From positions 1 through 64,000 of the forward strand of contig CDROCS010005899.1 of assembly GCA_977020255.1 (NCBI GenBank): a stretch of DNA of 64,000 bases, in the 5' to 3' direction. Position 1 is the first letter of the stretch, and every line of letters begins with the position of its first letter. A program made the translations under genes and the position numbers. Under the pieces are notes generated by a model that did no database searches, had not been told where the DNA came from, and worked only from the letters and a program-made list of their open reading frames with translations. Of this stretch, positions 45,703 to 63,604 are shown in pieces. Source of the stretch: Obrimoposthia wandeli. Taxonomy: Eukaryota.

Positions 45703-47901
45703 CTATTTAATACCTGCTTTCACGGCGCGCAGTTGATGAAGTTTTTTATAGCTTTCAATCAAGCGTAAGTGCTTATCTAAACCTTCCAGCTTCATACTGG
45801 TTTTGGTTAAACCTAAGAACTTCACCTCACCGGTAATTGAGCCAACCACATTCGCCATAACCTCTGCACCAAACATTCTGGTGAAGTTAACACGGTAATG
45901 CTCAAGTTCTAAATCTTCATCGAGGGTGACTTCAAGTACTGCGTGTAACGCTTGATAGAACAAGCCGCGCGCGACCGTATTGTTGTTGTACTGCAAGTAC
46001 ATCTCGACTAGCTCAATTGCTTCCTCTAATGCCCCTAGCGCGAGATAAATTAGAATCTTTAATTCAACAACGGTCAGTTGACCCCAAGCGGTATTTTCAT
46101 CAAACACAATGCCAATAAGGGTTGGGATGTCGGTATAGTTATCTATCTGACTTTCTTCTAAGCGTTCCACTAAACTCGCCAAAGCATCATCATCGAGAGA
46201 ATGCAGATTCAAGATGTCTTCGCGGTAGGCGAGTGCTTTGTTGGTATTATCCCAAACAAGATCTTCCACCGGATAGACTTCAGAATAATCTGGTACAAGA
46301 ATTCGACACGCAGACCCTAAATCAGAGAACTCAGCGATATACGATTCTTTGCCTAGAGTTTCTAAAATTCCGAATAAGCAATCAGACTCTTCTTCATTGG
46401 TGCCCGAACTATTGTTAGAAAAGCTCCACTCGCAGAATTCAAAATCATGCTTAGCACTAAAAAAGTGCCAAGAAATAACACCGGTTGAATCAATAAAGTG
46501 TTCCACGAAATTTTCTGGTTCAGAAACTTCCATGCTATTGAAGGTCGGCTTGGGCACATCGTTTAGGCCTTCAAAACTACGACCTTGTAATAGCTCGGTT
46601 AAGCTACGTTCTAGCGCCGCTTCAAAACTTGGGTGCGCACCAAAAGACGCAAACACACCGCCGGTTTTTGGATTCATCAAGGTCACACACATCACAGGGA
46701 ATTGACCGCCTAATGACGCGTCTTTCACCACAATAGGAAAGCCTTGAGCTTCCAGCGCGTTAATGCCTTCAACAATACTTGGGTACTTATTAATGACTTC
46801 CTGAGGAACATCAGGCAATACAATTTCTTGCTCAATGATTTGGCGCTTTACTGCACGTTCGAATATTTCCGACAGGCACTGAACCTTCGCTTCGTTAACA
46901 TTATTGCCCGCGCTCATACCGTTACTGAGGAACAAGTTTTCAATTAAATTCGAAGGGAAATAAACCGTCTCACCATCAGACTGACGAATATAAGGAATTG
47001 AACAAATGCCGCGCTCACTATTACCTGAGTTGGTATCAATTAAATGCGAGCCACGAAGTTCGTCTTCAGGGTCATAAATTTCACGGGTATAGTCATCCAA
47101 AATACCTTCTGGCAGCGCATCATCTTCGGTTAACTTAAACCATTTTTCGTTGGGGTAATGGACAAATTCGCTAGTGGCAATTTCCTGACCGAAGAACTGA
47201 TCGTTATAAAAGAAATTACAGTTTAAGCGCTCAATAAACTCACCTAAAGCAGAGCAAAGCGCGCTTTCTTTGGTCGCCCCTTTACCGTTGGTAAAACACA
47301 TTGGCGACGCCGCATCACGAATATGCAAAGACCATACATTTGGCACAATATTGCGCCAAGAAGAAATTTCAATCTTCATTCCCAAGTCGGCCAATAGGTT
47401 GGTCATGTTGGCAATGGTTTGCTCAAGCGGCAGGTCTTTACCCAAGATAAAAGTTTGCTTTTCGTCATCAGCTGCGCCCATCAACATGGCCTGGGCATCA
47501 GCATCGAGACTTGCAACCGTTTCGATCTTGAACTCAGGGCCTGTTTGAATCACTTTTTTCACGGTACAGCGTTCAATGGAGCGTAAAATACCCGCACGAT
47601 CTTTATCAGAAATGGTATCTGGTAGCTCAACCTGAATTTGGAAAATTTGGTTGTAGCGATCTTCAGGATCAACGATGTTGTTTTGTGAAAGTCTAATATC
47701 ATCCGTAGAGATACCTTTACCCACACAATATACTTTCACAAAATAGGCCGCACACAGCGCCGATGACGCGAGGAAGTAATCAAATGGACCCGGTGCGGAA
47801 GCATCACCCTTGTAGCGAATAGGCTGATCTGCGATCACTGTATAATCATCAAACTTGGCTTCAAGTCTGAGGTTGTCGAGAAAATTTACTTTGATTTCCA
47901 T
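45703..47901 (-). CDS. OsmC domain-YcaO family fusion protein
   Basis: N-terminal OsmC (ADQP, PGPFDYFLASSALC, CTVKK) followed by YcaO (FTNGKGAT, ALGEFIER, SNGMSAGN, CLSEIFER, RSLTELLQGR). Confidence 0.9.
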   Translation of the reverse strand: MEIKVNFLDNLRLEAKFDDYTVIADQPIRYKGDASAPGPFDYFLASSALCAAYFVKVYCVGKGISTDDIRLSQNNIVDPEDRYNQIFQIQVELPDTISDKDRAGILRSIERCTVKKVIQTGPEFKIETVASLDADAQAMLMGAADDEKQTFILGKDLPLEQTIANMTNLLADLGMKIEISSWRNIVPNVWSLHIRDAASPMCFTNGKGATKESALCSALGEFIERLNCNFFYNDQFFGQEIATSEFVHYPNEKWFKLTEDDALPEGILDDYTREIYDPEDELRGSHLIDTNSGNSERGICSIPYIRQSDGETVYFPSNLIENLFLSNGMSAGNNVNEAKVQCLSEIFERAVKRQIIEQEIVLPDVPQEVINKYPSIVEGINALEAQGFPIVVKDASLGGQFPVMCVTLMNPKTGGVFASFGAHPSFEAALERSLTELLQGRSFEGLNDVPKPTFNSMEVSEPENFVEHFIDSTGVISWHFFSAKHDFEFCEWSFSNNSSGTNEEESDCLFGILETLGKESYIAEFSDLGSACRILVPDYSEVYPVEDLVWDNTNKALAYREDILNLHSLDDDALASLVERLEESQIDNYTDIPTLIGIVFDENTAWGQLTVVELKILIYLALGALEEAIELVEMYLQYNNNTVARGLFYQALHAVLEVTLDEDLELEHYRVNFTRMFGAEVMANVVGSITGEVKFLGLTKTSMKLEGLDKHLRLIESYKKLHQLRAVKAGIK

Positions 47902-49280: not shown

Positions 49281-50528
49281 CTACTTTTTAACGCGCATGT
49301 CTAGGGATAAATCTTTAGCTGCCTTAACGCTCATCATTTCAATCAAGGTCATAGCATTTGATCCACCGTCGGTTCCAGTGCCGCCGCCCATTTGTACTTC
49401 AGGCACCCATTTTTGTTTCTCGATAGCCGCTGCAAAGCGACCCATAACAGCCTCGTAGGTTGCAAGCTTCTGGGCAAGTGCACCATCCGCCTCGATTACC
49501 AAACGCTTGTATGCACCATCACCTTCACCACGTAAAATTTGCTCTTGCTTATATTCTACTGCGGCTAGTTTCTTTTGCTCAGCTTCAAGTTTTTTCTGAC
49601 GTGCTACTTCTACATTCTTTTTAGCTGAAATAACCGCTACTTCTTTTTCGCGCTCTGCGTCTACTACGGCCTGCTCTTTGACAACTTCTTTCTGGTATTT
49701 AGCCGTCATTACATTCGCCTTACCTTGCTCTTCCGACGTTATGGCGTCTTGCTTAGCACGTTCGGCATTAGCAATAGCAGTAATGATCGCCATGGTTGCT
49801 TCACGTTTGGTAGCAATTTGCTGCAATGTTTTAGGTTCAAAGTCCCAATCGGTGATTTGAAAACCATTAACGTCAATTCCATAATCCGCAAGATCACTAT
49901 CTAAATGCACCGGTAAACCATCGTCGCCATAGCTGATAACCGGAACATTTTTAGTGACTTCCTTACCCGTGCTATCGTCTACCGTAGATATTTTCTCTAG
50001 TCGAGTTTGGAATTTACCTTTTGATATTTGCTGGCTTGACCATTGAGTATAAATGCTACGTTTCTCTGCGTAGGCTTCTTCAGAACTCATTAAACCTGCC
50101 GTTAGGTTCATACCTTCTTCGGTAACAGATTTGATTAATTTTTGTGATACACCGCGATTAGATCGAAACGCTTTATGGAGATGCAGCATGGTAGTTTCAT
50201 CACCAGGAAGTGTAAAACGTGCTTTGCCATAAACCGAACCAGTACCGCCATCTTGGTAACGTACCGAGATGCCGTTTTGATTGATTGAGGTGTCTATGTC
50301 TGCTGAGCTTTTGTCGTAGTCAAACGTAATGACGTCGTTATAAACCTCGGTGCTGCCAAACCATTGAGGATAAATACCTGGAGTGAATTTCACATACAGT
50401 TTACCAGTAGGGTACTGCACAACTGTCCGGTGCCCAGCGTCATTGATGCCGAATGCCATGAAAAGTAAGACTAGAGCTCCGATGAACATGACCCCTGTTA
50501 AGATCAGTTTAGCTGGAATTTTATTCAT
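49281..50528 (-). CDS. SPFH/band-7 domain membrane protein with coiled coil
   Basis: N-terminal TM, VRYQDGG, ITDWDFEP, AE-rich coiled coil; start MNKIP at 50528. Confidence 0.8.
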   Translation of the reverse strand: MNKIPAKLILTGVMFIGALVLLFMAFGINDAGHRTVVQYPTGKLYVKFTPGIYPQWFGSTEVYNDVITFDYDKSSADIDTSINQNGISVRYQDGGTGSVYGKARFTLPGDETTMLHLHKAFRSNRGVSQKLIKSVTEEGMNLTAGLMSSEEAYAEKRSIYTQWSSQQISKGKFQTRLEKISTVDDSTGKEVTKNVPVISYGDDGLPVHLDSDLADYGIDVNGFQITDWDFEPKTLQQIATKREATMAIITAIANAERAKQDAITSEEQGKANVMTAKYQKEVVKEQAVVDAEREKEVAVISAKKNVEVARQKKLEAEQKKLAAVEYKQEQILRGEGDGAYKRLVIEADGALAQKLATYEAVMGRFAAAIEKQKWVPEVQMGGGTGTDGGSNAMTLIEMMSVKAAKDLSLDMRVKK

Positions 50529-50766
50529 TATCTGTTTCCTTATTGGTGCTGTTGTCTTTTGATTTAAGTAGGTGCGTTGCCTTGCGAACACCTTCTTGGC
50601 GTGCTTTTTCTTCAGCAATTTCCAGCTCTATATCGGCTAAATCACCTTCAATGAAGGTGTCACGTAATTCTTCTTCTTTTTTGTCGCGAGTAAAATATTT
50701 TTTGAGCTGATGAACAAGCATCGCCAACAAAAATACAAGCGTAAGTATGATTAATAACCTGATCAT
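50521..50766 (-). CDS. Small single-TM/coiled-coil protein coupled to SPFH
   Basis: MIRLLIILTLVFLLAMLV TM followed by a charged helix; 8-bp overlap with SPFH; AAGGA SD. Confidence 0.7.
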   Translation of the reverse strand: MIRLLIILTLVFLLAMLVHQLKKYFTRDKKEEELRDTFIEGDLADIELEIAEEKARQEGVRKATHLLKSKDNSTNKETDNE

Positions 50767-50965: not shown

Positions 50966-51061
50966 TGTTAACTGTTGGCGAATGGCAAGGGCTCAGCTGC
51001 GAAGTTGGGTCTAGAGTGAACCGCTAGCAAAGCTGCGAGCTGATGAATAAACATGTTATGT
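50966..51061 (-). other. Long attC-like element
   Basis: Minus strand ACATAAC ... GTTAACA ends, pairing terminal arms and an internal GCTC/AGCT/CTAG imperfect stem; L-box pairing poor. Confidence 0.45.
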
Positions 51062-51207
51062 GGCCGTAGGCTGGAAGTACTATTTAACAACACTAGGGTA
51101 CAAAACGTATGACGTCATGTGCTGCTTTTTATTAGGAAGCAGGACTACAGTAAATGATGCCGTTACCTACATGGATTTAGGTAAGGGGCGTAAAAGAACG
51201 TGCTGGC

Positions 51208-51292: not shown

Positions 51293-51327
51293 TTCAACTC
51301 AGCCAGCCATCTCAATACAGCTTCTGA

Positions 51328-51371
51328 ATCACATTTCTTGCACATTTCACTCACAATTCCTGCACGTTTCA
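51328..51371 (+). promoter_or_regulatory. Four tandem 11-bp direct repeats, OmpR/PhoB-family operator-like
   Basis: ATCACATTTCT-TGCACATTTCA-CTCACAATTCC-TGCACGTTTCA, 47 bp upstream of the cotH start. Confidence 0.65.
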
Positions 51372-51418
51372 ACATTACTATGACTATTCAGTATAAAAAA
51401 CCGAATTAGAGGTGTGCC

Positions 51419-53629
51419 GTGGATATTGGAAGTAATAAAAATAAAATTTCCCATAAAACTGTTTTGGAGGCTGTCGCTAGGTGGGCTCCACTTCCGCTAG
51501 CGATAGCGGTATCCCTGCTTTCAGGTTGTGGTGGCAGTTCATCCAATACCAGCACAAATACCAGTACGCCTAGCAGTAGCGGTACATTGGTGATTAATGA
51601 AGTGATGGCTAAAGACAGTGCTGGTGGTAATGATTGGATTGAACTTTACGTTACGGCGGGTTCGGTAAATCTAGGTGATTACAGCCTAGTCGATGACGAT
51701 GAAGAACACGCATTGCAAAGCCTGCCGGAGTTAACCTTAACTGCCGGTGAGTTTGTAATTATTCACGCAGTAGATGAAGACGATGCTGCCAGTCAGGAAG
51801 GTTATTACGTTACGTTTAAGCTGGGTTCAAGCGATAGTGTGAATCTTTATCATGCAGATGACTTGGTAGATTCTATATCTTGGGATAAGGGTGAAGCCTT
51901 GGTCGGTTTTACTTACGGTCGTTATACCGATGGTACGGGTGGCAAACAAACTCTTACACCCACTCCAGCCGCGAATAATATTCAAGCGAAGCGCGGTCCT
52001 TTAATCATCAACGAAATTGTGAATCAAGATGCCAATGGCGGTGATGATTGGTTTGAACTCTACAACAATGGCACAGCTACTATTGAGCTAGGTAATTATA
52101 CCGTGGTCGATGATGGTGATGACTCGGTGGAGACTTCTTTACCTAATATAAGTCTAGCGGCAGGTGAATACATTGTTATTTACGCCACGGATCTAGATCC
52201 CAGCGAACATTATGTGCCTTTTAAATTGGGCTCAAGCGACAGTCTTACGTTGAAGCTCAATGACGAAACTGTTGATTACCTTGAATGGGATGAAGCAGAT
52301 GCCCCACAAGGTTATGGTTATGGCGCATATCCCGATGGCGCTTGGACTTCACGCACCCTGGAAGTAAGTAAGGGGGGTAGTAACGTCGATGCGGTGGTAT
52401 TTGAAAGCGACACCATAGAAAGTATTTATATCAATATTGCCAGTGCTGATTGGCAAGACATCATAGACAATGCCATAGACAAAGAATATCACACAGCCTC
52501 TGTTACTTACAAAAATGTCACCCTAGAAGACGTGGCTTTTCGCACCAAGGGGAATTCTACTCTCTCTCAGGTAGTCAATTACTCACCAGGTCAAGCAGGT
52601 TATACGCGCTTTAGCTTTAAGGTGGACACCAATGAATATGTGTCCGGGCAAAAGTTGCTTAACATGAAAAAACTCAATTTTAATAACAACCTAAATGATC
52701 CCTCTTACATGCGCGAAACAATTTCATATGAAGTTATGCGCAATTTAGGTGTGCCTGCACCGCGTACATCTTTTGTGAAGCTGTATATCAATAATGAGCT
52801 ACATGGTTTGTACACAATGGTTGAAGCGGTTGACGGAGAGTTTCTTGAGCAGCATTTTGATAATTCGGATGGTGATCTTTATAAGCCCGATGGTTCAGGT
52901 GCTGGTTTAGTGGGTAATGACTTAGTGTGGATCGATGACGCTTATACAAGTTATACCGCCATTGAGAAAAAGAGCAACGAAGACATCACAGACAATAAGG
53001 CATTAATGACATTTTTAGATGGTATCAATAATGGAAGTGATGCAAACAGCATTATGAACAGTGATGCCATGTTGCGTTATTTAGCGGCATCCACAGCCAT
53101 GAGTAACCTAGACAGTTACCAAGGTAGTTTGGCGCACAACTATTATTTGTACGAAGAAGGTGGACAGTTCTCCATTATCCCTTGGGATTTTAATCAATCA
53201 TTTGGCTCGTTCTCACGGGGTTGTGATGTGACAACACTTTACATCGATGAGCCTACCGAAAGTGCTTTGTCTGAGCGCCCTCTAATTGAAACCCTTTTAG
53301 CCAGCGATACCAATTTGAGTATTTACCATGATTACTTATCTGAGTTAATTAATGGCGGAGGCTTAGATCCACAAGCAATAGAAGCCAAAATCGATAGCAT
53401 CGAAAGTTTGATTTCTACCGCAGTATCAGAGGATCCAAGTGCCTTTTACACTCACAGTGGATTTGAATCGGGCTTAACGGATTTGCTTAATTTTGCTACT
53501 CAGCGAGCCGAAAATGTGCAGGATCAATTAAACGGAAACCTAGGCAGTAGTGGCGATGGTAATGGATGTGCCGTTACCAATACTGGCCCTGGAGGAAACC
53601 TACCTCCTGGTCCCCCTCCGGCACCTTAA
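51419..53629 (+). CDS. CotH-family kinase lipoprotein with two lamin-tail domains
   Basis: LSGC lipobox (Cys37); two INE...DWxELY LTD repeats; CotH motifs RTKGNS, KKLNFNN, DPSYMRE, APRTSF, GLYTMVE, NLDSY..HNYYLY, PWDFN; C-terminal PPGPPPAP. Confidence 0.88.
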   Translation: MDIGSNKNKISHKTVLEAVARWAPLPLAIAVSLLSGCGGSSSNTSTNTSTPSSSGTLVINEVMAKDSAGGNDWIELYVTAGSVNLGDYSLVDDDEEHALQSLPELTLTAGEFVIIHAVDEDDAASQEGYYVTFKLGSSDSVNLYHADDLVDSISWDKGEALVGFTYGRYTDGTGGKQTLTPTPAANNIQAKRGPLIINEIVNQDANGGDDWFELYNNGTATIELGNYTVVDDGDDSVETSLPNISLAAGEYIVIYATDLDPSEHYVPFKLGSSDSLTLKLNDETVDYLEWDEADAPQGYGYGAYPDGAWTSRTLEVSKGGSNVDAVVFESDTIESIYINIASADWQDIIDNAIDKEYHTASVTYKNVTLEDVAFRTKGNSTLSQVVNYSPGQAGYTRFSFKVDTNEYVSGQKLLNMKKLNFNNNLNDPSYMRETISYEVMRNLGVPAPRTSFVKLYINNELHGLYTMVEAVDGEFLEQHFDNSDGDLYKPDGSGAGLVGNDLVWIDDAYTSYTAIEKKSNEDITDNKALMTFLDGINNGSDANSIMNSDAMLRYLAASTAMSNLDSYQGSLAHNYYLYEEGGQFSIIPWDFNQSFGSFSRGCDVTTLYIDEPTESALSERPLIETLLASDTNLSIYHDYLSELINGGGLDPQAIEAKIDSIESLISTAVSEDPSAFYTHSGFESGLTDLLNFATQRAENVQDQLNGNLGSSGDGNGCAVTNTGPGGNLPPGPPPAP

Positions 53630-53640
53630 CCACCCAAAAG

Positions 53641-53669
53641 CATGCCTCCTGATGTATCTAGGAGGCATG
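53641..53669 (+). promoter_or_regulatory. Hairpin sequestering the AGGAGG SD of the VTC gene
   Basis: CATGCCTCCT-GATGTATCT-AGGAGGCATG; SD at 53660-53665 lies 8 nt before TTG 53674. Confidence 0.65.
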
Positions 53670-53673
53670 ATAA

Positions 53674-54528
53674 TTGAACGATTTGATCGAGGTGGTTATG
53701 AATAACCAGCAAGGTTTAGCGGAACGCCCGCTGAATTATAATTTTAAACAAGAGCCTGTCGACGGTGAAAACTCTCAGCCGCTTGAATACCTAAACTCGC
53801 TTATGAAATTTAAGGGTCATGGCCTAATAGATTTAAAAAATGCGGCGTTAATGAACAGGGTAGATACTAAGTATCTCATTGCTAGAAACAAGCTAAATGA
53901 TTTACTGGAAAGCTTATTACCTTTTTATACCGCGCTTGAAATTAATGGCAAAAGAATCTTCACCTACGAAAACACCTATTTTGATACACCAAAGATGGAC
54001 TTTTATCACCAGCATCACCAAGGAAAGCTAAACCGCTTTAAAGTGCGTCATCGTGATTATGTCGACAGTGAGAAAGGGTTTCTCGAGGTTAAGTTTAAAA
54101 ATAATAAGGGGCGCACTATTAAATCTCGAATGGGATCAGCTCTCGCGTGTATTGATGGTGATAATGAAGAGCAATTTTTAGCTAAGCAACTTAACGATCA
54201 ATACTCAAACCTACAAGCGACACAGTGGGGGAGCTATCAACGTATTGCCTTAGCCAATGAATCAGCAGGCGAGCGCCTAACGCTAGACTTTAACCTTACC
54301 TTTAGCTCTATTGATAGTGTTCATCGGGTTGAATTGCCTAATTTCTTTATCGCCGAGCTGAAGCAGAGCAAACTTGATTTTCAATCACCCTTTGCTCTGG
54401 AAATGGCTCGCCTTGGGATTAGGCCCAAAAAGTTTAGTAAATATTGCATTGGTACGAGCCTGCTTAACCCAGCATTAAAATCCAATCGATTTAAAGCCGT
54501 ATTAATGGCCGCTCAAAAGTTTCATTAG
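53674..54528 (+). CDS. VTC (polyphosphate polymerase) domain protein
   Basis: LMNRVDTKY, YFDT, RFKVRHRDY, FLEVKFK, YQRIAL, RLTLD, IAELK, FSKYCIG. Confidence 0.88.
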   Translation: MNDLIEVVMNNQQGLAERPLNYNFKQEPVDGENSQPLEYLNSLMKFKGHGLIDLKNAALMNRVDTKYLIARNKLNDLLESLLPFYTALEINGKRIFTYENTYFDTPKMDFYHQHHQGKLNRFKVRHRDYVDSEKGFLEVKFKNNKGRTIKSRMGSALACIDGDNEEQFLAKQLNDQYSNLQATQWGSYQRIALANESAGERLTLDFNLTFSSIDSVHRVELPNFFIAELKQSKLDFQSPFALEMARLGIRPKKFSKYCIGTSLLNPALKSNRFKAVLMAAQKFH

Positions 54529-54565
54529 TTATTTTTATTTATCTAGTTACAACAGGAATATTTTT

Positions 54566-55228
54566 ATGTTTAGCACCTTGGATTTGGATTTTGTTTTTAA
54601 ATTAATCCTCAATACATTATCGGTATCATTCATCGTATTTGGTTGTTACTTAAGAGGGTTCCTTTTGAGTAAATCGGGCAATCGCGAACATGCTACTTCA
54701 TTTTTATTGTTTGCGGTGGGTGTGTTTAGCGTTACCTATCTTCTGCATTCTGTGGATATATCAATGGGATTTGCATTTGGACTGTTTGCGGTATTTTCCA
54801 TGTTGCGCTATCGCACCGAGTCGATATCAGTAAGAGAAATGACTTATCTGTTTCTAGTGATCGCCATGTCGTTGTTATCTTCGGTAGGATCCACCAATTA
54901 TGTTGAGTTAATACTGCTGCACAGTGTATTTTTTAGTTGCGCCTTTTTTTGCGAAGCTGTGTTGTCAAAGAAAACCTTACTTCAGCAAACCATTGAGTAT
55001 GAAAAAATTGAAAATATCACTCCGCAAAAACGCCAAGTTTTGATCGCAGATATCAAAGCGCGTACGGGTTTAGATGTAAAAAGGCTTGAAATCACTCATA
55101 TCGATTTTTTAAAAGACTGTGCCAGTGTACTGGTATTTTATCGTCCAGTTGTGGATCAACGTTTAGAGCTAGAAGCTGGGCATGAATCTTTGCCAAATAA
55201 TGCCAGCAATTATGCGCAAACCAAATAA
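54566..55228 (+). CDS. DUF4956 membrane protein
   Basis: SMGFAFGLFAVFSMLRYRTE, REMTYLF, YEKIENITPQKR, RTGL. Confidence 0.9.
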   Translation: MFSTLDLDFVFKLILNTLSVSFIVFGCYLRGFLLSKSGNREHATSFLLFAVGVFSVTYLLHSVDISMGFAFGLFAVFSMLRYRTESISVREMTYLFLVIAMSLLSSVGSTNYVELILLHSVFFSCAFFCEAVLSKKTLLQQTIEYEKIENITPQKRQVLIADIKARTGLDVKRLEITHIDFLKDCASVLVFYRPVVDQRLELEAGHESLPNNASNYAQTK

Positions 55229-55244
55229 GACCATGGATTAATGA

Positions 55245-56339
55245 ATGAATAAATTATTGAATACCAGTTTTATTATCATGAGCTTATTAGTTGCCAATGA
55301 AGTGTTATCCGATGATGGCTCGGCTCAAAAAATATCTGGCACGCTGATGTTTGATTATGGCTTGTTACCTGAGAGCGGTGAGGGATTTACTTCTGAAATA
55401 AGGCGCGCTCGTATTGATTTAAAGCATAGCTTGAATCAAGACTGGGCCGTAAAACTGCAACTGACATTTGACGAAGAAGATCAAAGTAGTGAAATTGGTG
55501 ATGCTTATATGCGTTTCAGCGGCATTGAAAATATGAGTATTACGATGGGTAAAATGAAAGAACCGTTTGGTTTGGAAAATATGACCAGCTCAAAGAATAT
55601 CACATTTCTTGAGCGCTCAATGGCCAGTAATGCTTTTGCCCCCGATAGAAATAAAGGACTAATGCTATCGGGTACGCCGGGCGATGTAACATGGGCGGTG
55701 GCCTTAATGGATATAGACAGTGATAACAAAGAAGACGCTCCCTATGCTGTGACCGGAAGAGCCACATGGGCGCCCTTGCAAACTGAAGATCAAACGTTGC
55801 ATGTCGGTTTTTCAGCTTCATTGCGTCAATTGAATGGTGATAAGTTCGAAATCGATGAGCGAGTAGAGCTGCATAACTCAGAAAAAATCATCACCAGCGG
55901 CAAGGTCGATACCGACTCGTTGCAGTTATCTGGTATTGAGGCCGCTTGGGTTCATGGAGCATTTTCTGTGCAATCAGAATACATGAGTGCCGACTTGAAG
56001 GCGGTAGATGCCAGTGAAAATTCAGAATTTGATGGCTATTATCTGCAAGCCAGCTACTTTTTAAGTGCTGACATGCGCCCTTATAAAAAGGGTGTCTTTA
56101 GCAGCATTAAACCGCAGTCAAAAGAGGGGGCTTGGGAGCTATCTTCAAGATACAGTATGCTAAATACTAATAAGGTAAGTGATGGCAGTACGGTACGAAC
56201 GAGTACCTTAGGAGTTAATTATTATTATGATAAAAACCTGCGTCTAATGACGAATATATTACATGCGCAATCATCTACTGACGTGGCCGATAGCGACACA
56301 TGGAATGGCGCTTCTTTTCGGCTTCAATATCTTTTTTAA
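55245..56339 (+). CDS. OprO/OprP-family phosphate-selective porin
   Basis: Signal peptide, EIRRARI, GKMKEPFGLE, SSKNITFLERS, YLQASYFL, WELSSRYS, GVNYY; C-terminal Phe. Confidence 0.88.
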   Translation: MNKLLNTSFIIMSLLVANEVLSDDGSAQKISGTLMFDYGLLPESGEGFTSEIRRARIDLKHSLNQDWAVKLQLTFDEEDQSSEIGDAYMRFSGIENMSITMGKMKEPFGLENMTSSKNITFLERSMASNAFAPDRNKGLMLSGTPGDVTWAVALMDIDSDNKEDAPYAVTGRATWAPLQTEDQTLHVGFSASLRQLNGDKFEIDERVELHNSEKIITSGKVDTDSLQLSGIEAAWVHGAFSVQSEYMSADLKAVDASENSEFDGYYLQASYFLSADMRPYKKGVFSSIKPQSKEGAWELSSRYSMLNTNKVSDGSTVRTSTLGVNYYYDKNLRLMTNILHAQSSTDVADSDTWNGASFRLQYLF

Positions 56340-56414
56340 GGCATTGTATGCCATTAGGCGTTATGTTTATTACGGTTTTATCGCTTAGTCAGAGAAGGTT
56401 GGCCCTATTTTTAT

Positions 56415-57917
56415 ATGTTTAAATTATCACAGATGACGTTCAGTATTCGCTTTAAACTATTTTCAACCTTACTGCTGGCCACTGGCAGTGTGGTGTTGTG
56501 CATGTACCTGCTGATGTTATGGAGCTTTGATCGAGGTTTCTTGGATTATGTAAACAAGCAGGAGCAACAAAAATATCAGGCGTTTAGTCAGGTATTAGCA
56601 AAACATTGGCAGGAAAATAACAGTTGGAAACAATTGCGCAGCCATCGCCGTACTTGGGATCTTTTATTAAGTCAGTATATTGATTCCCCCGATTCTGATT
56701 TTAAAGAAGAGGGCCCTTCTGAATCTAATAACCGAGGTAGAGGGCCACGTTCGTTTGGTCCTGCTGACGATTTTCAGCATCCACCACCTCCGCGTAAAGG
56801 TGGAAAAAAACCATTACTGTTAGATGAAAATAAGAAGATATTAATAGGCCGTGCTAAAAATCTTATAAATATTGAGTTTTATGAGATTGTGGTGGAGGAT
56901 AAAATCGTAGGATTTTTAGGTCAATTTCCACAGAAAAAACTCGCCGACGAGCTGGATGTATTGTTTGTAGAGCAACAGTCTAGGGCATTCATGCTATCGG
57001 CCTTAATGATGGTTGTTATTTGTATATTGGCGGCTTTACCCATAACCGCGCACTTGGTGAAACCCATTCGTCATTTAAGCCGAGGTACTCGGCGATTAAT
57101 CTCTGGTCGTTATAAGACTGTAATCCCTGTTACTAGCAATGATGAGTTAGGCCAGTTGTCTAAAAACTTTAATACCTTAGCCAATACTCTAAAAGAAAAT
57201 GAAAAAGCGCGCCAACAATGGATCGCTGATATCTCTCATGAATTACGCACTCCACTGGCGATATTAAAGGGAGAGATTGAAGCCATACAAGATGGTATTC
57301 AGGCAAGTACTCCGCGGGCGATAGATTCTTTACATGCTGAGGTGGAGCATTTAAATCACTTGATAAACGACTTGTATGAGATTTCAATGTCGGATATTGG
57401 TGCACTGAATTACCAGAAATCAAATATCGATGTAGCCGAGATTTTACAAGCCACATTGAATTCTTTTCAAGCAGAATTCAAGAATGCAGGTATTACCTTG
57501 ATCTTTAACTCTAAGCTAAAGAAAAGCCCTCACGTATTGGCCGATGCTACTCGACTCAGGCAGCTATTTAGCAACTTATTAAAAAATACCCTGCGCTATA
57601 CCGACCGCGAAGGTACGCTAGAAGTAGAAATTAGTGCGAAGTCTGATGCCATTAAAATTCAATTTAAAGACTCAGCACCCGGTGTGAGTGAAATAGAAAT
57701 GGGAAAATTATTTGAGCGCTTATATCGAGTAGAGTCTTCTCGTAATAGGGCCACAGGAGGAGCTGGCTTAGGCTTGTCGGTGTGCCAGAATATAGTAGTC
57801 GCTCATGAGGGCACTATCACCGCAAAAGCATCCCCTTATGGTGGCGTCTGGATATCCATTAGTTTACCTGCTTTAGGTTTTAGCAAGGATGCACACAAAA
57901 AGAGGGAAGTATTATGA
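56415..57917 (+). CDS. BaeS-like sensor histidine kinase
   Basis: 2 TM, HAMP, ADISHELRTPL, QLFSNLLKN, DSAPG, LFERLYR, GAGLGL. Confidence 0.92.
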   Translation: MFKLSQMTFSIRFKLFSTLLLATGSVVLCMYLLMLWSFDRGFLDYVNKQEQQKYQAFSQVLAKHWQENNSWKQLRSHRRTWDLLLSQYIDSPDSDFKEEGPSESNNRGRGPRSFGPADDFQHPPPPRKGGKKPLLLDENKKILIGRAKNLINIEFYEIVVEDKIVGFLGQFPQKKLADELDVLFVEQQSRAFMLSALMMVVICILAALPITAHLVKPIRHLSRGTRRLISGRYKTVIPVTSNDELGQLSKNFNTLANTLKENEKARQQWIADISHELRTPLAILKGEIEAIQDGIQASTPRAIDSLHAEVEHLNHLINDLYEISMSDIGALNYQKSNIDVAEILQATLNSFQAEFKNAGITLIFNSKLKKSPHVLADATRLRQLFSNLLKNTLRYTDREGTLEVEISAKSDAIKIQFKDSAPGVSEIEMGKLFERLYRVESSRNRATGGAGLGLSVCQNIVVAHEGTITAKASPYGGVWISISLPALGFSKDAHKKREVL

Positions 57918-58615
57918 ATCAGCCTAGCGTGAAGCAGCAGGTATTAATTGTTGAAGACGAACCCAAACTTGCACAAGTTTTATCTGTCTACTTGCTTCAG
58001 TCTGGTTTTGAAACCCATATTATTAATAATGGCCTAGAAGTCATTGATTGGGTGAGACAGCATCAGCCTGACTTAATACTCCTCGATCTAATGTTGCCAG
58101 GCCTTAATGGCATAGAGATATGCAAAGAGCTTAGAATATTTTCAAATGTTCCCATCATCATGGTGACTGCCCGGGTGGAGGAAGTGGACCGTTTATTAGG
58201 GTTGGAGTTAGGGTGCGACGATTATATTTGCAAGCCCTTTAGCCCGAGAGAAGTGGTTGCCAGAGTGAAGGCTATTTTAAGACGCTTTCAACCAGCCCAG
58301 CCTGATTCGATTGTGCAGGGCATTGTGCTAGATGAAGCACGTAATAAAACCACGATTAACGGCCATGAACTGGTATTAACAGTCGTTGAATTTCAGTTGT
58401 TGAGCATCTTGCTTCACGGCAAAGGTAGGATTTATTCCAGAGAACAACTTATGGATCATATTTATACCGACAATCGTGTCGTGAGCGACCGTACGATAGA
58501 CAGTCACATTAAAAAATTGCGTAAACGACTTGCCGAAGTACTGCCAGAACAAGAAATTATTCACTCCGTTTATGGGATGGGTTATAAATTGGAAGAGCCA
58601 CCCTCGTCGCAGTAA
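57914..58615 (+). CDS. BaeR-like OmpR-family response regulator
   Basis: VEDE, LDLMLPG, DDYICKPFSPREV, winged-helix RTIDSHIKKLR, VYGMGY. Confidence 0.92.
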   Translation: MNQPSVKQQVLIVEDEPKLAQVLSVYLLQSGFETHIINNGLEVIDWVRQHQPDLILLDLMLPGLNGIEICKELRIFSNVPIIMVTARVEEVDRLLGLELGCDDYICKPFSPREVVARVKAILRRFQPAQPDSIVQGIVLDEARNKTTINGHELVLTVVEFQLLSILLHGKGRIYSREQLMDHIYTDNRVVSDRTIDSHIKKLRKRLAEVLPEQEIIHSVYGMGYKLEEPPSSQ

Positions 58616-58748
58616 CGGTAGTTTCTTCATTCTAGTGTCTTACTCCTAGAGTTTCAGTTTAAGTATTTAATTATAGCCTTTTCATATTTTTTGCTCTTTT
58701 GCTGTGTAATCTAAAATGACATCAACAGACTCTTAATGAGGTGAGCAA

Positions 58749-59129
58749 ATGAACTTCCAACTTTCTTCAAACACATTTTTTCGCAGCCTAATGGCTGTAT
58801 GTCTATTTACCGCCATCAGTATGATGGCCAGCGCTCAAAGCCAAGGCGATGAAAGACCTAAGCATAAAGCTGGCCCTCAACACCTGATAGAGGCCTTGCA
58901 AGTCACAGAGGATCAACAGGATTCATTTTTGACGGTTATGAAAGCTCAACACGAAAAAAGAATGAGCATTCATGAGCAATACAGAGATAATCATGAAGAA
59001 GAACGTACACTGATGACGGCTTTGCATGAAGAAACCCTAACTCTTTTACAAGACGTGCTAACGGCTGAACAGCTGGAAACATTCACAAGCATGGAAAAAC
59101 AAAAACCATCAAGAAAGCCTCGTCATTAA
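58749..59129 (+). CDS. Spy/CpxP-like small periplasmic helical protein
   Basis: Signal peptide ending ASA, L.VTEDQQ, L..VLTAEQ (LTxxQ) motifs, His/Glu-rich. Confidence 0.65.
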   Translation: MNFQLSSNTFFRSLMAVCLFTAISMMASAQSQGDERPKHKAGPQHLIEALQVTEDQQDSFLTVMKAQHEKRMSIHEQYRDNHEEERTLMTALHEETLTLLQDVLTAEQLETFTSMEKQKPSRKPRH

Positions 59130-59194
59130 ACAGGACTAGCGGTTTTGGGATATTAAAGGCGATATTTCTATCAGCCTTTATCCCCTTTATTACT

Positions 59195-59227
59195 TCCATA
59201 TTGTTTACACATTTTTTGCACATTGTT
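59195..59227 (+). promoter_or_regulatory. Three tandem 11-bp repeats similar to those upstream of cotH
   Basis: TCCATATTGTT-TACACATTTTT-TGCACATTGTT. Confidence 0.55.
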
Positions 59228-59301
59228 GTTCTAATTTTACTTTGAACAATCCAAGAATAGTTATTCTTGGATTTAAGCGTTTAATTTATAAGGAATTCAA
59301 C

Positions 59302-59775
59302 ATGGTTGCTATTTCAGGGTCGGCACCACCTCCACCACCTCGTCAATCGAGTCAGCAAGCCTCGCTTAGTGAAGAGCAGCAAACGCTTATTACCGAGACC
59401 TTATCTCAATATGATGCGGACAACTTATCCGAAGCCGATGCTCAATCAATTGTCGAAGCCTTCTCAGAGGCAAGCCTTGCACCTGGGAAGGCGTTTGCCG
59501 ATGCCTTATCTGAGGCAGGGTTTGATGCAAAAGAAATAGGGGATCTCGCAGGTATTGGTCCAAGCCAAGAAAGTATGGGGACCAGTAAACCACCGCCTCC
59601 CCCTAAATCTGAGGGACAAGGCTTCACTGATGAAATGCTGACAACGTTAGAGACGCTGCTGACAGAGTATGAGGGGAGGGACCTAGATAGCGATACCATT
59701 GATTCAATAACCGCGACTATGGAGGAGTTATTTGGTTTGGATAAATCAGGTCGCTTATTGGATGTTCGTGCGTAA
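59302..59775 (+). CDS. Acidic hypothetical protein with two poly-Pro tracts, no Sec signal
   Basis: AAGGA SD before ATG 59302; MVAISGSAPPPPPR ... KPPPPPK ... GRLLDVRA. Confidence 0.7.
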   Translation: MVAISGSAPPPPPRQSSQQASLSEEQQTLITETLSQYDADNLSEADAQSIVEAFSEASLAPGKAFADALSEAGFDAKEIGDLAGIGPSQESMGTSKPPPPPKSEGQGFTDEMLTTLETLLTEYEGRDLDSDTIDSITATMEELFGLDKSGRLLDVRA

Positions 59776-59964: not shown

Positions 59965-61158
59965 TTACTTGTTTTCGTTTTGAGAGAACAAGCTACCAGC
60001 GGCTGGAGCCATTGGCTTAACTTCAGCGGCTACTGGAGCAGCTGATGCTGGCTTAGCTTCTGCAGCAGAGTGGATTGCACCTGCAAGAGACTGAGTTGGC
60101 TTAGTTGTTGTAGTAACTGGCTTAGGCGCCGCTACTGGAGCTGGCTTAGCAACAGGTGCTTTTTTAGCTACTACTTTCTTAGCGGCTACTTTTTTAGCAG
60201 GCTTAGCAGCAACTTTCTTAGCAGCTACTTTTTTAGCAGGCTTAGCAGCAACTTTCTTAGCGGCTACTTTTTTAGCAGGCTTAGCAGCAACTTTCTTAGC
60301 AGCTACTTTTTTAGCAGGCTTAGCAGCCGCTTTCTTAGCAGCTACTTTTTTAGCAGGCTTAGCAGCCACTTTCTTAGCAGCTACTTTTTTAGCAGGCTTC
60401 TTAGCGGCTTTCTTAGCTTTAGCAGCTTCTTTCTTAGCAGCAGCGATTTCTTTTTTCTTAGCGGCAGCAGCAGCTTTTTTAGCTTTAGCAGCGGCTTTCT
60501 TTGCAGCAAGAGCAGCTTTTTGCTTAGCAGCAGTGGCGGCTTTCTTAGCTTTAGCAGCAGACTTCTTAGCAGCAGCGGCAGCTTTCTTCTTAGCGGCAGC
60601 AGCAGACTTCTTATCAGCAACAGCTTGCTTCTTAGCAGCAGTAGCAGCAGTTTTCTGTTGTTCTTTTTCTACAGCAGCCGTTGCTTTAGCAATTGTTGCA
60701 GCAGCGTCAGCTTCAGTTTTAGCCGTAGTAGCTTCTAACTTAGCAGCAGCGAAAACTTCTTTAGCAGCAGTAGCAGCTTGCTTAGTTGTTTCAACTTTAG
60801 CTTTAGCAGCTTCAAGGGCTTTAACAGTAGCAGCAGATTTCTTAGCTTTAACTTTATCAGCGGCTTTCTTTTTAGCAGCATTTGCTTTGGCTAAAGCAGC
60901 AACGGCTTTAGTTTGTGCAGACTTTGCTTTAGCCAATGCTTTATCAGCATCAGTACTCATTTTCTGGCGCGCTTTTTCCAGGTTTACTTCTAATGCAGCA
61001 ATTTCTTTCTGCAATAATTGAACTGGGCTTAATACCACTTTAAGAGCTGGAGCTTTTTTAGCAGCAACCTTTTTAGCTGGAGCTTTTTTAGCTACGGTTT
61101 TCTTTGCAGCGATTTTTTTTACTGCAGGCTTTTTAATTGTGCTTTTGCGAGCGGCCAT
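59965..61158 (-). CDS. algP: Histone H1-like Lys/Ala/Pro-rich protein (AlgP-like)
   Basis: MAARK start, coiled-coil segment, KPAKKVAAKKVAA repeats; near rsd/algQ as in Pseudomonas. Confidence 0.75.
   Translation of the reverse strand: MAARKSTIKKPAVKKIAAKKTVAKKAPAKKVAAKKAPALKVVLSPVQLLQKEIAALEVNLEKARQKMSTDADKALAKAKSAQTKAVAALAKANAAKKKAADKVKAKKSAATVKALEAAKAKVETTKQAATAAKEVFAAAKLEATTAKTEADAAATIAKATAAVEKEQQKTAATAAKKQAVADKKSAAAAKKKAAAAAKKSAAKAKKAATAAKQKAALAAKKAAAKAKKAAAAAKKKEIAAAKKEAAKAKKAAKKPAKKVAAKKVAAKPAKKVAAKKAAAKPAKKVAAKKVAAKPAKKVAAKKVAAKPAKKVAAKKVAAKPAKKVAAKKVVAKKAPVAKPAPVAAPKPVTTTTKPTQSLAGAIHSAAEAKPASAAPVAAEVKPMAPAAGSLFSQNENK
60166..60399 (-). repeat. 39-bp tandem repeat x6 encoding KPAKKVAAKKVAA
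   Basis: GCAGGCTT recurs every 39 bp, six times. Confidence 0.92.
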
Positions 61159-62614: not shown

Positions 62615-63604
62615 TTAATTAAGATAAAAAACGCGTCCATTTGAACCGCTCGCAACATAGCCTTGTTTCGCAAAGGCAACATCTTCGATCAGCACGTTAT
62701 TACTTACCCATTTGTTTCTAGGGACAGCTTGCCAAGTATTTTCTAGTGTGGCTGTTTGTGTTTCCCATAGTTGGATCTTACCAGCACTCGAACCGGTCAA
62801 TAGTTTTGAACCATCGTTACTAAAACGCGCGCTGCTGTAGAAGCCGCTATTGATGGGGAACTCGCTAATAACGGCACCTGTTTTGCTATCCCATAGTCGG
62901 CCTGGCTCACCTAAGGCTGAAGTAAATACAAAACGACCGTCGGCTGATATCTCGGCACTGCGAACTTGGTTGTTATGCTCTAGGCGCTGAATTTGTTTGC
63001 CACTATTAAGATCCCAAATACGCGCACTGGAATCGTCACTGGCACTTGCGGCGAAGGTTCCTTGTTGGTCTATGCTGACATCCAAAACACTGCCATCGTG
63101 GCGAAATGTACGCTTGATTCCACCATTCTTAATATCAAATAAGGTGGCGGTATAATCGGCCATGGCTAATAAAGCATATTGTCCATTGCTGCTGAGGCTG
63201 ATGTCGTGAATATCTCCTGGGGCATTCCACAACCAAATTGCTTCGCCTGTTTTACTATTCCATAACGCGATGGTTCGGTTGTCGGTGGTTGCGACAAAAT
63301 TTCCTTCTGGAGAGAAATCACAACTCACAATGCTGCTGTTTTCCCCAGCTTGATGATTCCAATTATAAAGACGGTCAAATGGCTGTATGCGCCATAGGCT
63401 GCCGCCATGATGAATCGAGCCTGCAAAAGCAAAGCTGCCATCTTGATTGAGGCAAAGAGAGTGAGTACCTTGGCTCGCGAGTTCATCAAAACGCTCGGGT
63501 TGTTTACCGATACCGCAGGCGCTTAGAAACAAACTGGAAAGTAGTACTGGGAACAGTATTAATGAGGAGGGTAATTTGGGTATTGCAGCTGACTTCATAG
63601 TCAT
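62615..63604 (-). CDS. WD40-repeat lipoprotein
   Basis: LSAC lipobox, repeated ...W(D/N) units (IALWN, ARIWD, GRLWD, IQLWE). Confidence 0.85.
   Translation of the reverse strand: MTMKSAAIPKLPSSLILFPVLLSSLFLSACGIGKQPERFDELASQGTHSLCLNQDGSFAFAGSIHHGGSLWRIQPFDRLYNWNHQAGENSSIVSCDFSPEGNFVATTDNRTIALWNSKTGEAIWLWNAPGDIHDISLSSNGQYALLAMADYTATLFDIKNGGIKRTFRHDGSVLDVSIDQQGTFAASASDDSSARIWDLNSGKQIQRLEHNNQVRSAEISADGRFVFTSALGEPGRLWDSKTGAVISEFPINSGFYSSARFSNDGSKLLTGSSAGKIQLWETQTATLENTWQAVPRNKWVSNNVLIEDVAFAKQGYVASGSNGRVFYLN

Follow-up and report, generated by a model that had tools for sequence, protein, structure and literature searches.

The question raised by positions 51419 to 59775 of the 64-kb window (the whole stretch of DNA analyzed) is what unites a CotH lipoprotein, a VTC enzyme, a DUF4956 membrane protein, a porin and a two-component pair, and whether together they might make a phosphate polymer and export it. 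The initial annotation had described eight co-oriented genes there, and that description was confirmed: eight ORFs, all on the + strand and at the same coordinates, encode an LTD-LTD-CotH lipoprotein, VTC, DUF4956, Porin_O_P, BaeS-like, BaeR-like and Spy/CpxP-like proteins and a poly-proline acidic protein, in that order. With the starts as originally called, the successive intergenic gaps are 44, 37, 16, 75, -4, 133 and 112 bp. Two start codons were then revised after an independent gene call on L081, a metagenome scaffold 94-95% identical and with the same eight-gene order, placing the VTC start at 53698 (276 aa) and that of the poly-Pro protein at 59302 (157 aa). The module's carrier is a marine, Gram-negative (diderm) bacterium.

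Comparison with 80 related loci (81 with the window) revealed that VTC-DUF4956 is the invariant core, the two genes being adjacent in 78 of the 80 with a median gap of 1 bp. The eight-gene order also occurs in Bermanella (L001, L003), and Colwellia, Paraglaciecola and Desulfobacterales have the components in other arrangements; the gene set is therefore not due to chance, and the neighborhood search proposed for CotH, VTC, DUF4956 and porin genes returned one conserved module. The CotH-VTC-DUF4956 linkage itself turned out not to be new, as it has been published for Gram-positive pel loci (Streptococcus intermedius SIR_1594-1592 and C. perfringens NELoc-2), in which cotH, polyphosphate-polymerase and DUF4956 (and DUF4832) genes are accessory. 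Those loci likewise hold secreted CotH, cytoplasmic VTC and membrane DUF4956 families in one operon, but attached to Pel polysaccharide genes and without an outer-membrane component, whereas pel-like genes are absent within 8 kb either side of the window module, which has in addition a porin, its own pair of regulators and a cis-box common to its promoters. We found no description of the Gram-negative form in the literature. In S. intermedius, deletion of CotH or DUF4956 produces an aggregation phenotype and deletion of VTC does not, and the CotH and DUF4956 deletions have opposite effects on Pel level. That VTC deletion leaves aggregation unaffected counts against export, and the differing outcomes argue against a pathway that runs strictly from VTC through DUF4956 to CotH, as first envisaged.

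The VTC gene (+ strand, 53698..54528; longest ORF from 53674) encodes a soluble triphosphate-tunnel enzyme with neither an SPX nor a membrane domain, and its match to the Pfam VTC profile (6.5e-25 for the ORF 53674-54528) covers positions 1-234 of 235. Its AlphaFold2 model (pLDDT 89) has as its best PDB fold matches yeast Vtc4 structures with AppNHp or polyP (8i6v, 7ytj, 3g3r; E about 1e-13), ahead of E. coli ygiF (1e-9) and other CYTH enzymes (1e-7), i.e., the predicted fold is nearer to Vtc4 than to any other tunnel enzyme, in line with the original assignment. The family alignment has 30 invariant columns, mostly K/R/E; the invariant K/R/E columns line the tunnel and align with Vtc2 motifs. 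Against PDB sequences the VTC profile found only a weak match (Vtc2, E 0.01), a point against export. The tunnel superfamily consists mostly of hydrolases or cyclases, and we know of no bacterial VTC protein with a known biochemical activity, which also counts against export. A close precedent is found in yeast, where the VTC complex (Vtc4/Vtc3/Vtc1) acts as the eukaryotic polymerase and translocase of polyphosphate; its catalytic protein is of the Pfam VTC family too and supplies the top fold match. Both systems join a tunnel enzyme in the cytoplasm to a small membrane protein of several helices, a pairing that suggests synthesis coupled to membrane passage; in the window, however, the enzyme is a separate soluble protein lacking SPX, and its partners also include a CotH kinase, a barrel in the outer membrane and a two-component switch.

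That membrane protein, DUF4956 (54566..55228, + strand, 220 aa; Pfam 2.9e-45), is predicted by AlphaFold2 (pLDDT 85.7) to have five helices followed by a C-terminal alpha/beta domain that is small, ACT-like and reminiscent of ligand-binding domains, and its alignment carries an invariant GLFA...RYRT...M motif. In one lineage DUF4956 is fused to a barrel, and the DUF4956-DUF2490 fusion with an internal signal peptide was seen in 36 sequences from many contigs; as the signal peptide or lipobox in the fusions directly follows the C-terminal domain of DUF4956, that domain must be cytoplasmic. A likeness to the yeast VTC channel found no support: the model had no fold match in the PDB, the yeast VTC membrane channel included, and no relationship to the Vtc1-type membrane domain was detectable. 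No pore is evident in DUF4956 either, and together these results also weigh against export.

The porin (55245..56339, + strand, 364 aa; Pfam Porin_O_P 1e-54) is a true homolog of the Pseudomonas aeruginosa phosphate and pyro/polyphosphate porins, as had been proposed, with E values of 2e-29 to OprP (2o4v) and 1.7e-27 to OprO (4rjx). The more specific label of a polyphosphate-type porin is not borne out. Equivalents of OprP R59, D94, S124 and R133 are kept across the window subfamily, and R60, S125 and K126 are present in the window porin, but the K121 position is not basic in the subfamily, and both positions that set OprP specificity apart from that of OprO, 62 and 114, carry a basic residue (in 86% and 98% of 50 members). 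Uptake is the role of OprP and OprO, and this family history, with the missing K121, is a further observation against export. The window gene also differs from those of OprP and OprO in being translationally coupled to DUF4956 and in having no Pho box before the operon. Porin_O_P directly follows DUF4956 in 50 of the 81 loci (median gap 0.5 bp), and the barrel family beside VTC-DUF4956 varies, with DUF2490 in the porin's place in Bacteroidales and a TPR-YaiO barrel in one locus. Chloroflexi are monoderm, and the Anaerolineae loci, presumed monoderm, have none of these three barrels; varied barrels in diderms and none in Anaerolineae fit something crossing the envelope. An adjacent barrel is also absent from about a dozen proteobacterial loci and from Runella, Planctomycete and Calditrichota loci, which counts against export.

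The first gene of the operon (51419..53629, + strand) encodes a 736-aa protein with two LTD domains (6e-25) and a CotH domain (2.6e-64), and its translation has a lipobox, LLSGC, with the Cys at residue 37, a Ser/Thr-rich tether and a G/P-rich C-terminal tail. Aligned to Bacillus cereus CotH (5jd9; E 2.9e-15) it has both catalytic Asp positions; across 54 CotH homologs the catalytic D565 never varies and at least 90% keep the Cys of the lipobox, supporting the extracytoplasmic lipoprotein that was first suggested. In architecture it resembles an extracellular cellulosome protein of C. thermocellum, LTD-LTD-Fn3-CotH. CotH is frequent in the related loci, nearly always as a lipoprotein with its catalytic Asp intact, but it is optional: at least 17 loci have VTC-DUF4956-porin alone, and therefore making a phosphodonor for CotH, the purpose initially envisaged, cannot be the cassette's sole one. 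Sigma-K is mother-cell specific. Bacillus cotH has a sigma-K promoter and its kinase was assayed with ATP; the spore-coat enzyme was thus wrongly cited as acting outside a cytoplasm, and it offers no precedent for a kinase working without ATP. Unlike this ATP-using mother-cell product, the window CotH carries a lipid anchor and a pair of lamin-tail domains and belongs to a diderm host, with no sporulation context. We know of no kinase of the protein-kinase fold that uses polyphosphate as donor, another point against the export reading.

The regulators are a sensor histidine kinase (56415..57917, + strand, 500 aa; Pfam HAMP/HisKA/HATPase) and an OmpR-family response regulator (57914..58615, + strand, 233 aa; Response_reg and Trans_reg_C), whose first 4 bp overlap the end of the kinase gene. 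Their best NCBIfam matches are BaeS (427 bits against a cut-off of 500) and BaeR (311 against 380), so by sequence they are BaeSR-like, not equivalogs. Nine other loci have BaeR-like orthologs (51-77% identical) linked to the module, and in an alignment of nine linked BaeS-like orthologs the window kinase shows an insert rich in Pro and Arg (PPPP) within its periplasmic domain. That the pair is dedicated to the module, as had been inferred, is supported by a shared cis-element. Across all 64 kb of the window, the 11-bp-phased box CACWTTNNTTGCACWTT is matched just four times (shuffles give 0.99), and every match falls in the cotH, spy-like or poly-Pro promoter. Over the -35 region of cotH lie four phased 11-bp repeats (51330..51373, + strand), CACATTTCTTG CACATTTCACT CACAATTCCTG CACGTTTCAAC, a candidate site for the BaeR-like regulator; the first two (51330-51346) match CACWTTNNTTGCACWTT exactly and the others were read from the sequence. 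Within the 650-bp spacer upstream of cotH, only the box-bearing 125 bp (51295..51418, + strand), the conserved operon promoter region, is shared with L081, the sequence further upstream being unrelated. A copy with two mismatches (58683..58699, + strand) lies 50 bp upstream of the spy-like gene, at a site with an equivalent in L003, and two overlapping copies with two and zero mismatches (59197..59224, + strand) precede the poly-Pro gene by ~80 bp. In other genera the box is found 34-110 bp upstream of cotH, VTC, sensor kinase and EF-hand genes; the related loci, 1.48 Mb in total, contain 54 matches, of which about 38 are so placed upstream of system genes, the sensor kinase itself and CotH-less cassettes among them. 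The shared box is an observation; its binding by the BaeR-like regulator is inferred. E. coli BaeSR controls spy. The resemblance to BaeSR-Spy extends to full-length best matches, sensor domain included, and to a box-bearing Spy/CpxP-like gene directly downstream of the pair, but the scores fall below the equivalog cut-offs, the window sensor has its insert, and the regulated operon is cotH-VTC-DUF4956-porin in place of efflux pumps. The box also differs from what we take to be the E. coli BaeR site.

The reading we favor, tentatively and at somewhat less than an even chance, is that polyphosphate leaves the cell by a synthase-dependent route which a two-component system of the envelope induces. 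The module would span the envelope, with a phosphate polymer made in the cytoplasm and delivered to the cell exterior. The soluble Vtc4-like tunnel enzyme would polymerize polyphosphate from nucleoside triphosphate while docked on DUF4956, whose invariant RYRT loop and C-terminal domain would face the cytoplasm; DUF4956 would pass the chain across the inner membrane, and the anion-selective OprO/P-family barrel would let it through the outer membrane. Lipid-anchored LTD-CotH would be an optional add-on: it would modify targets on the surface or in the matrix by acting on the exported polymer or jointly with it, the polymer serving as phosphodonor or scaffold; a phosphodonor role is possible and is the weakest step. 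The BaeSR-like pair would switch on the whole set via the CACATT..TTGCAC boxes, which would also drive the Spy-like periplasmic protein and the poly-Pro protein. Synthase-dependent secretion of Pel, PNAG, cellulose and alginate is analogous in its inner-membrane-associated synthase and dedicated outer-membrane barrel, and the TPR-barrel protein of one module locus adds to the likeness, but this is analogy only, as no families are in common and the module's polymer would be inorganic. To our knowledge, no bacterial machinery is yet known to push a phosphate polymer out of the cell.

The same proteins could be run in reverse as a phosphorus-acquisition cassette, with the porin admitting environmental pyro-, tri- or polyphosphate, DUF4956 importing it and the tunnel enzyme hydrolyzing it. 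The uptake role of OprP and OprO, the tripolyphosphatases of the tunnel superfamily (e.g., ygiF) and the upstream genes of L005, putatively phoB, phoR and pstS by N-terminal sequences and order, favor such scavenging, but the operon lacks a Pho box and is driven, along with a Spy-like envelope protein, by a BaeSR-like system, the top fold matches are to a polymerase and not to hydrolases, the TPR-YaiO partner recalls polymer exporters, and the CotH and Gram-positive pel linkages go unexplained, and so we judge scavenging unlikely. We give similarly little credence to a VTC storage polymer that stays cytoplasmic, with DUF4956 as anchor or regulator via its ACT-like domain, the porin supplying phosphate and CotH working independently with another donor. 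The authors of the streptococcal work suggested that the polymer may remain in the cytoplasm, and a ligand-binding-like domain and no evident pore in DUF4956 agree with this, yet it would not explain why three barrel families adjoin or are fused to DUF4956 in many diderm loci, nor why the most frequent partner is a lipoprotein kinase outside the cytoplasm.

More doubtful still is that CotH is an ordinary ATP kinase, with VTC-DUF4956 providing or gating periplasmic nucleotide release, or acting as a CYTH cyclase-like signaling unit that controls CotH from inside. Characterized CotH kinases do use ATP, the catalytic residues are conserved in the window protein, and class IV adenylyl cyclases are among the CYTH fold matches of the VTC model, but six orders of magnitude in fold E-value separate the VTC family from the cyclases, and cassettes without CotH exist. 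The last alternative is that the CotH triad, the phosphate porin and a BaeSR-Spy unit for envelope stress are independent of one another and no more than neighbors. It draws on the fact that each block's family is also found by itself and on the E. coli control of spy; it is very improbable, having been largely refuted by linkage that survives rearrangement in three groups and by one cis-box before cotH, spy-like, poly-Pro and kinase genes and CotH-less cassettes across genera.

The last two genes of the set encode small proteins. The secreted CpxP/Spy/ZraP-like protein (58749..59129, + strand, 126 aa), with an ortholog in L003, has a signal peptide and an LTAEQ (LTxxQ-type) motif in its translation and a weak Pfam Metal_resist match (27.4 bits against a cut-off of 29.2). 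The acidic poly-Pro protein (59302..59775, + strand; longer ORF from 59242) belongs to no known Pfam or NCBIfam family and no Sec signal was seen in the 157-aa translation; a PPPPP run occurs in it twice, as does an LSxxQ.../YD..LS..DA motif. In Colwellia loci its homologs separate the regulator pair from cotH, and one homolog, in a Bacteroidales locus, has a signal peptide.

All eight co-oriented ORFs that the initial annotation had described between 51419 and 59775 were present, on the + strand, in our ORF calls and translations. In order, they encode an LTD-LTD-CotH protein of 736 aa, a VTC-domain protein, a DUF4956 protein and a Porin_O_P porin (each assigned by Pfam), a BaeS-like kinase and a BaeR-like regulator whose NCBIfam scores lie below the equivalog cut-offs (427 versus 500 bits and 311 versus 380 bits, respectively) and mark the pair as a related paralogue of BaeSR, a CpxP/Spy/ZraP-type protein, and an acidic protein with two PPPPP runs and no family match in Pfam or NCBIfam. 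The seventh assignment is weak by score (Pfam Metal_resist, 27.4 bits against a cut-off of 29.2); members of that family are recognized by the family model, LTxxQ motifs and a signal peptide, and the translated sequence here contains an LTAEQ motif as well as a signal peptide. A metagenome scaffold, L081, carries the same eight genes in identical order at 94-95% identity, and its gene calls place the VTC start at 53698 and that of the poly-Pro gene at 59302. The module was not only real, as first seen, but more coherent than was visible from the sequence alone. A shared promoter repeat, here called the box, and a conserved linkage effectively exclude chance adjacency. We hold with high confidence that the module is conserved and co-regulated; the cotH-VTC-DUF4956 triad is known but uncharacterized, and the form described here, with its own regulation and a porin, is new.

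The VTC protein (276 aa) matched its Pfam family at 88.5 bits against a cut-off of 23, over profile positions 1-234 of 235, and gave a confident AlphaFold2 model (pLDDT 89, pTM 0.85). The top PDB fold matches of the model, 8i6v_E, 7ytj_D and 3g3r (~1e-13, TM ~0.6), are all to yeast Vtc4, either as part of the VTC complex or with AppNHp or polymer bound; Vtc2 ranked lower, as did ygiF of E. coli (1e-9) and other members of the CYTH group (1e-7), so that the closed beta-tunnel of Vtc4 is the fold to which the predicted structure appears closest. Thirty columns, mainly Lys, Arg and Glu, are invariant in an alignment of 57 sequences, including K58, R117, R119, K132, R182, R193, E220, S247 and K248 (numbered on the 276-aa protein), and the conserved motifs align with Vtc2. 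A PDB sequence search with a profile of 22 sequences gave no match at E 0.01, and one with 57 sequences reached Vtc2 alone (E 0.01); because the profiles extend only that far, no residue-level alignment to Vtc4 was obtained, and the invariant residues are putative equivalents of Vtc4 K200, R264, R266, K281, R361, R373, E426 and K458. Yeast VTC adds SPX and a fused Vtc1-type membrane domain that forms a channel, whereas the protein here is soluble and consists of the VTC domain alone. Among prokaryotic proteins, to our knowledge, only those with a VTC domain are related to the polyphosphate polymerase of eukaryotes, and we know of none that has been assayed.

The question of how far this arrangement extends was approached by a genome scan with the VTC alignment, which confirmed at least 546 loci; the 80 that scored best were compared by tblastn with the eight proteins and by clustering of all ORFs. 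These 80 were chiefly from marine Gammaproteobacteria, with Bermanella the closest among them (64-67% identity), and also included Desulfobacterota, Bacteroidota, Planctomycetota, Anaerolineae and Calditrichota. VTC was followed by DUF4956 in 78 of these best 80, a count which, like all those that follow, is a lower bound skewed to marine Gammaproteobacteria because ORF calling was crude (longest ORFs) and the best-scoring loci were taken; the two exceptions, L019 and L054, have little sequence after VTC. Median gaps were 1 bp between VTC and DUF4956 and 0.5 bp between DUF4956 and the porin gene, the latter lying directly after DUF4956 in 50 of 81 loci (the window included), all of them Proteobacteria or Desulfobacterota. 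A CotH gene adjoins in 52 loci, to which one giant Planctomycete LTD-CotH, detected by Pfam alone, can be added. Near VTC there were both CotH and porin (29 loci), porin only (17), CotH only (16) or neither (12), and the neighbours of the porin-only cassettes are unrelated. The gene-neighbourhood check therefore bore out the linkage, with one refinement that follows from these partner counts: VTC-DUF4956 is the core and CotH its most frequent yet optional partner.

Elsewhere, an outer-membrane partner is retained but drawn from another family. Loci of Bacteroidales and relatives run VTC, DUF4956, DUF2490 (a predicted outer-membrane barrel; match 4e-28), CotH, a gene for a small secreted product, a kinase of LytS type and a response regulator, which is of LytTR type in the related loci L083 and L084. 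A DUF4956 profile search of 1.84 billion representatives returned 2270 relatives, and the best 150 of these included DUF4956-DUF2490 fusions, one cluster of which comprises 36 sequences from numerous contigs and sources, and no natural VTC-DUF4956 fusion. The DUF4956-DUF2490 fusion (L083:7001-8383) has an internal signal peptide between its halves, and lies in a locus without CotH that reads Cthe_2159-family protein, VTC, fusion, LytS kinase and LytTR regulator; the Cthe_2159-family protein occupies the usual place of CotH. A DUF4956-CotH fusion, found once (L085:7001-9016), has an internal hydrophobic stretch that is the retained lipobox of CotH, and follows a TPR-YaiO barrel gene and VTC and precedes three further tandem CotH genes. 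Both kinds of fusion place the C-terminal domain of DUF4956 in the cytoplasm. In the AlphaFold2 model of the window DUF4956 protein (pLDDT 85.7), five helices are followed by an alpha/beta domain at the C terminus; helices 3 and 4 flank the invariant GLFA...RYRT...M motif, for which the positive-inside rule and the fusions predict a cytoplasmic location. A fold search of the PDB with this model, VTC membrane chains included, gave no significant match (best E 0.07). A study of the S. intermedius pel operon proposed the streptococcal DUF4956 to be an MgtC-type membrane protein; hhalign of our profile against E. coli YhiD (MgtC family) showed no similarity (probability 0.3%), a weak test since the target was a single sequence.

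The CotH domain (Pfam 218 bits; aligned to 5jd9) belongs to a protein with a lipobox, LLSGC, ending at Cys37 and followed in the translation by a Ser/Thr-rich tether, and conservation in the column of this Cys is 90% or higher. The Bacteroidales copies have acidic residues directly after the lipidated Cys, resembling the surface-export signal of that phylum. The catalytic Asp residues of B. subtilis CotH are D228 and D251; D565, the equivalent of the former, is invariant in 54 sequences, and the second Asp is found at 590 in 39 and/or at 592 in 17 of them. The Bacillus protein is a spore-coat protein expressed in the mother cell, unlike the lipoprotein here with its diderm marine gammaproteobacterial context, and the C. 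thermocellum cellulosome offers a comparable extracellular protein, LTD-LTD-Fn3-CotH. The LTD-CotH orthologues (53540-53629 in the window; L003-L065) also share a C-terminal SGDGSG[F/Y]C motif, with a conserved Cys, that precedes a variable Gly/Pro-rich tail.

The box, an 11-bp-phased direct repeat, CACWTTNNTTGCACWTT, was traced from a 9-mer common to the upstream regions. At no more than 2 mismatches it has four matches in the 64-kb window, where shuffles predict 0.99. Each is on the + strand: one precedes cotH (51330), one the spy-like gene (58683) and two the poly-Pro gene (59197 and 59208). The related loci, 1.48 Mb in total, contain 54 matches, of which about 38 are positioned 34-110 bp before a system gene and on its strand, the genes being cotH, the VTC gene of CotH-less cassettes (L008, L010), the BaeS-like kinase gene, the spy-like gene and a gene for a secreted EF-hand protein. 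The aligned sites consist of three phased units and then a TAnAnT element, which puts the box over the -35 region, as in the sites of PhoB/OmpR-type activators. The window and L081 have in common only the final ~125 bp of the spacer before cotH, exactly the box-bearing promoter. We infer that the BaeR-like protein binds the box, and the presence of the box before the kinase gene in Colwellia suggests autoregulation. Linked BaeSR-like pairs (regulator 51-77% identical) lie downstream of the cassette in L001, L003 and L004, upstream in Colwellia and Paraglaciecola, and divergently in Desulfobacterales; boxes are also seen in loci where no such pair adjoins, which means that the regulator gene can reside at another site. 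Other lineages have LytS/LytTR, HisKA with a LuxR-type regulator, or MalT-like regulators beside the module. Scans for sigma-70 promoters and terminators gave numbers below or not above those in shuffles, and hence were uninformative. The EF-hand protein (~100 aa, with calcium-binding motifs; L016:6177-6482, L024:5879-6223, L034:6191-6502, L014:6745-7050 and L053:10830-11123) hints at a calcium link; in Colwellia its gene separates the regulator pair from the poly-Pro gene and has the box in its promoter.

These features can be assembled into a mechanism in which a Vtc4-like polymerase would make a phosphate polymer in the cytoplasm (polyphosphate from ATP), the chain would pass through a DUF4956 conduit and then a dedicated outer-membrane barrel, and the surface lipoprotein CotH would take the exported polymer, not ATP, as its phosphoryl donor. 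Cytoplasmic synthesis with delivery across the envelope would fit the tight, translationally coupled VTC-DUF4956 pair, the dedicated and interchangeable barrel in many diderm loci, the extracytoplasmic lipoprotein kinase as the usual partner, and the envelope-type regulation with its Spy-like protein. Export of a polymer by the module is a possibility that we rate as somewhat short of probable; that polyphosphate is the donor for CotH seems unlikely, and equally doubtful is the complete picture of a bacterial synthase-dependent polyphosphate secretion machine whose product replaces ATP for a surface CotH. Much the same mechanism had been put forward in the initial annotation, and it is only partly supported: the conserved, co-regulated module stood, while the appeal to Bacillus CotH as a precedent for a compartment without ATP did not, that protein being a sigma-K-driven kinase that uses ATP.

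Possible but less likely rivals to export are uptake and hydrolysis, intracellular synthesis by a membrane-anchored enzyme, and an ATP-dependent CotH with VTC as a signalling unit. The porin matches Porin_O_P at 186.7 bits, OprP (2o4v) at 2e-29 and OprO (4rjx) at 1.7e-27; of the central binding site of OprP (R59, R60, D94, K121, S124, S125, K126 and R133), the equivalents of R59, D94, S124 and R133 are at least 90% conserved in 50 cassette porins, basic residues occupy positions 62 and 114 in 86% and 98% of these, and the position of K121, N112 in the window protein, is not basic. Anion selectivity is plausible. The Pho-regulon control typical of OprP and OprO has no counterpart here, as a search that allowed 3 mismatches found no Pho box before either the operon or the porin gene. 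The Anaerolineae loci have VTC, a downstream CotH and, by tblastn, DUF4956 in all three, and in which ORF clustering and tblastn found no barrel of the Porin_O_P, DUF2490 or TPR-YaiO families. Chloroflexi are monoderm, and some diderm loci are likewise without an adjacent barrel. Gram-positive pel operons are described with contiguous accessory genes, namely cotH, a "polyphosphate polymerase", DUF4956 and often DUF4832. In S. intermedius, deletion of DUF4956 or CotH lowered aggregation and shifted Pel levels in opposite directions, and the VTC deletion aggregated like the wild type; CotH and VTC genes are also present in NELoc-2 of C. perfringens. That set is contiguous with pelDEA(DA)FG and the DUF4832 hydrolase, whereas the window module is flanked by YcaO-OsmC, SPFH, ParA-like and WD40 genes, which are unrelated to it, and has no DUF4832 in itself or its flanks. 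The literature searched on DUF4956 held no paper on the Gram-negative porin-linked form, and that on polyphosphate, in which secretion from bacteria is reported, named no exporter.

The module would make testable what bacterial VTC-domain proteins do, by what route polyphosphate reaches the exterior of bacterial cells, and where secreted CotH-type kinases, found widely in the settings of biofilms, cellulosomes and surfaces, get their phosphoryl donor. Culturable marine bacteria are available for these questions (Pseudoalteromonas, Shewanella, Colwellia and Marinobacter), and the shared box gives a handle on the inducing signal and the remaining regulon. A polymer donor for CotH, if true, would solve the problem of kinase action in an ATP-free compartment.

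Both borders of the module are sites of gene gain or loss, as an SPFH/Band-7 gene (49281-50618, -) and a 397-aa ORF (59965-61158, -; no Pfam or PADLOC match) are missing from the same places in L081. Farther out, an OsmC-YcaO fusion of 732 aa (45703-47901, -; YcaO 1e-60, YcaO_C 2e-70, OsmC 3e-08), unrelated to the module, also occurs in L081, there adjoining a CxxCxxCC protein, and a bacterial WD40 beta-propeller protein of 329 aa (62615-63604, -) is kept there as well. A defence-system reading was dropped, because the PADLOC defence models gave no match for seven proteins. An Rfam scan of the window gave no match at gathering thresholds; just below threshold, RF02001 (group II intron D1-D4) matched 50993-51189 (+) over the full model length (31.9 bits where gathering requires 32; E 1.3e-4). 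The match falls in the variable portion of the spacer that precedes cotH and is absent from L081, and with no D5-D6 or intron ORF seen nearby it is probably an intron remnant. Runs of at least three prolines occur in 3 of the 58 window ORFs, all three in the module, at 53612-53620 (CotH tail), 56781-56792 (the periplasmic insert of the BaeS-like kinase) and 59326-59340 and 59590-59604 (the poly-Pro protein), and the related loci have them in 10 of the 12 linked kinases and in all 4 homologues of the poly-Pro protein, versus 36 of 975 other ORFs.
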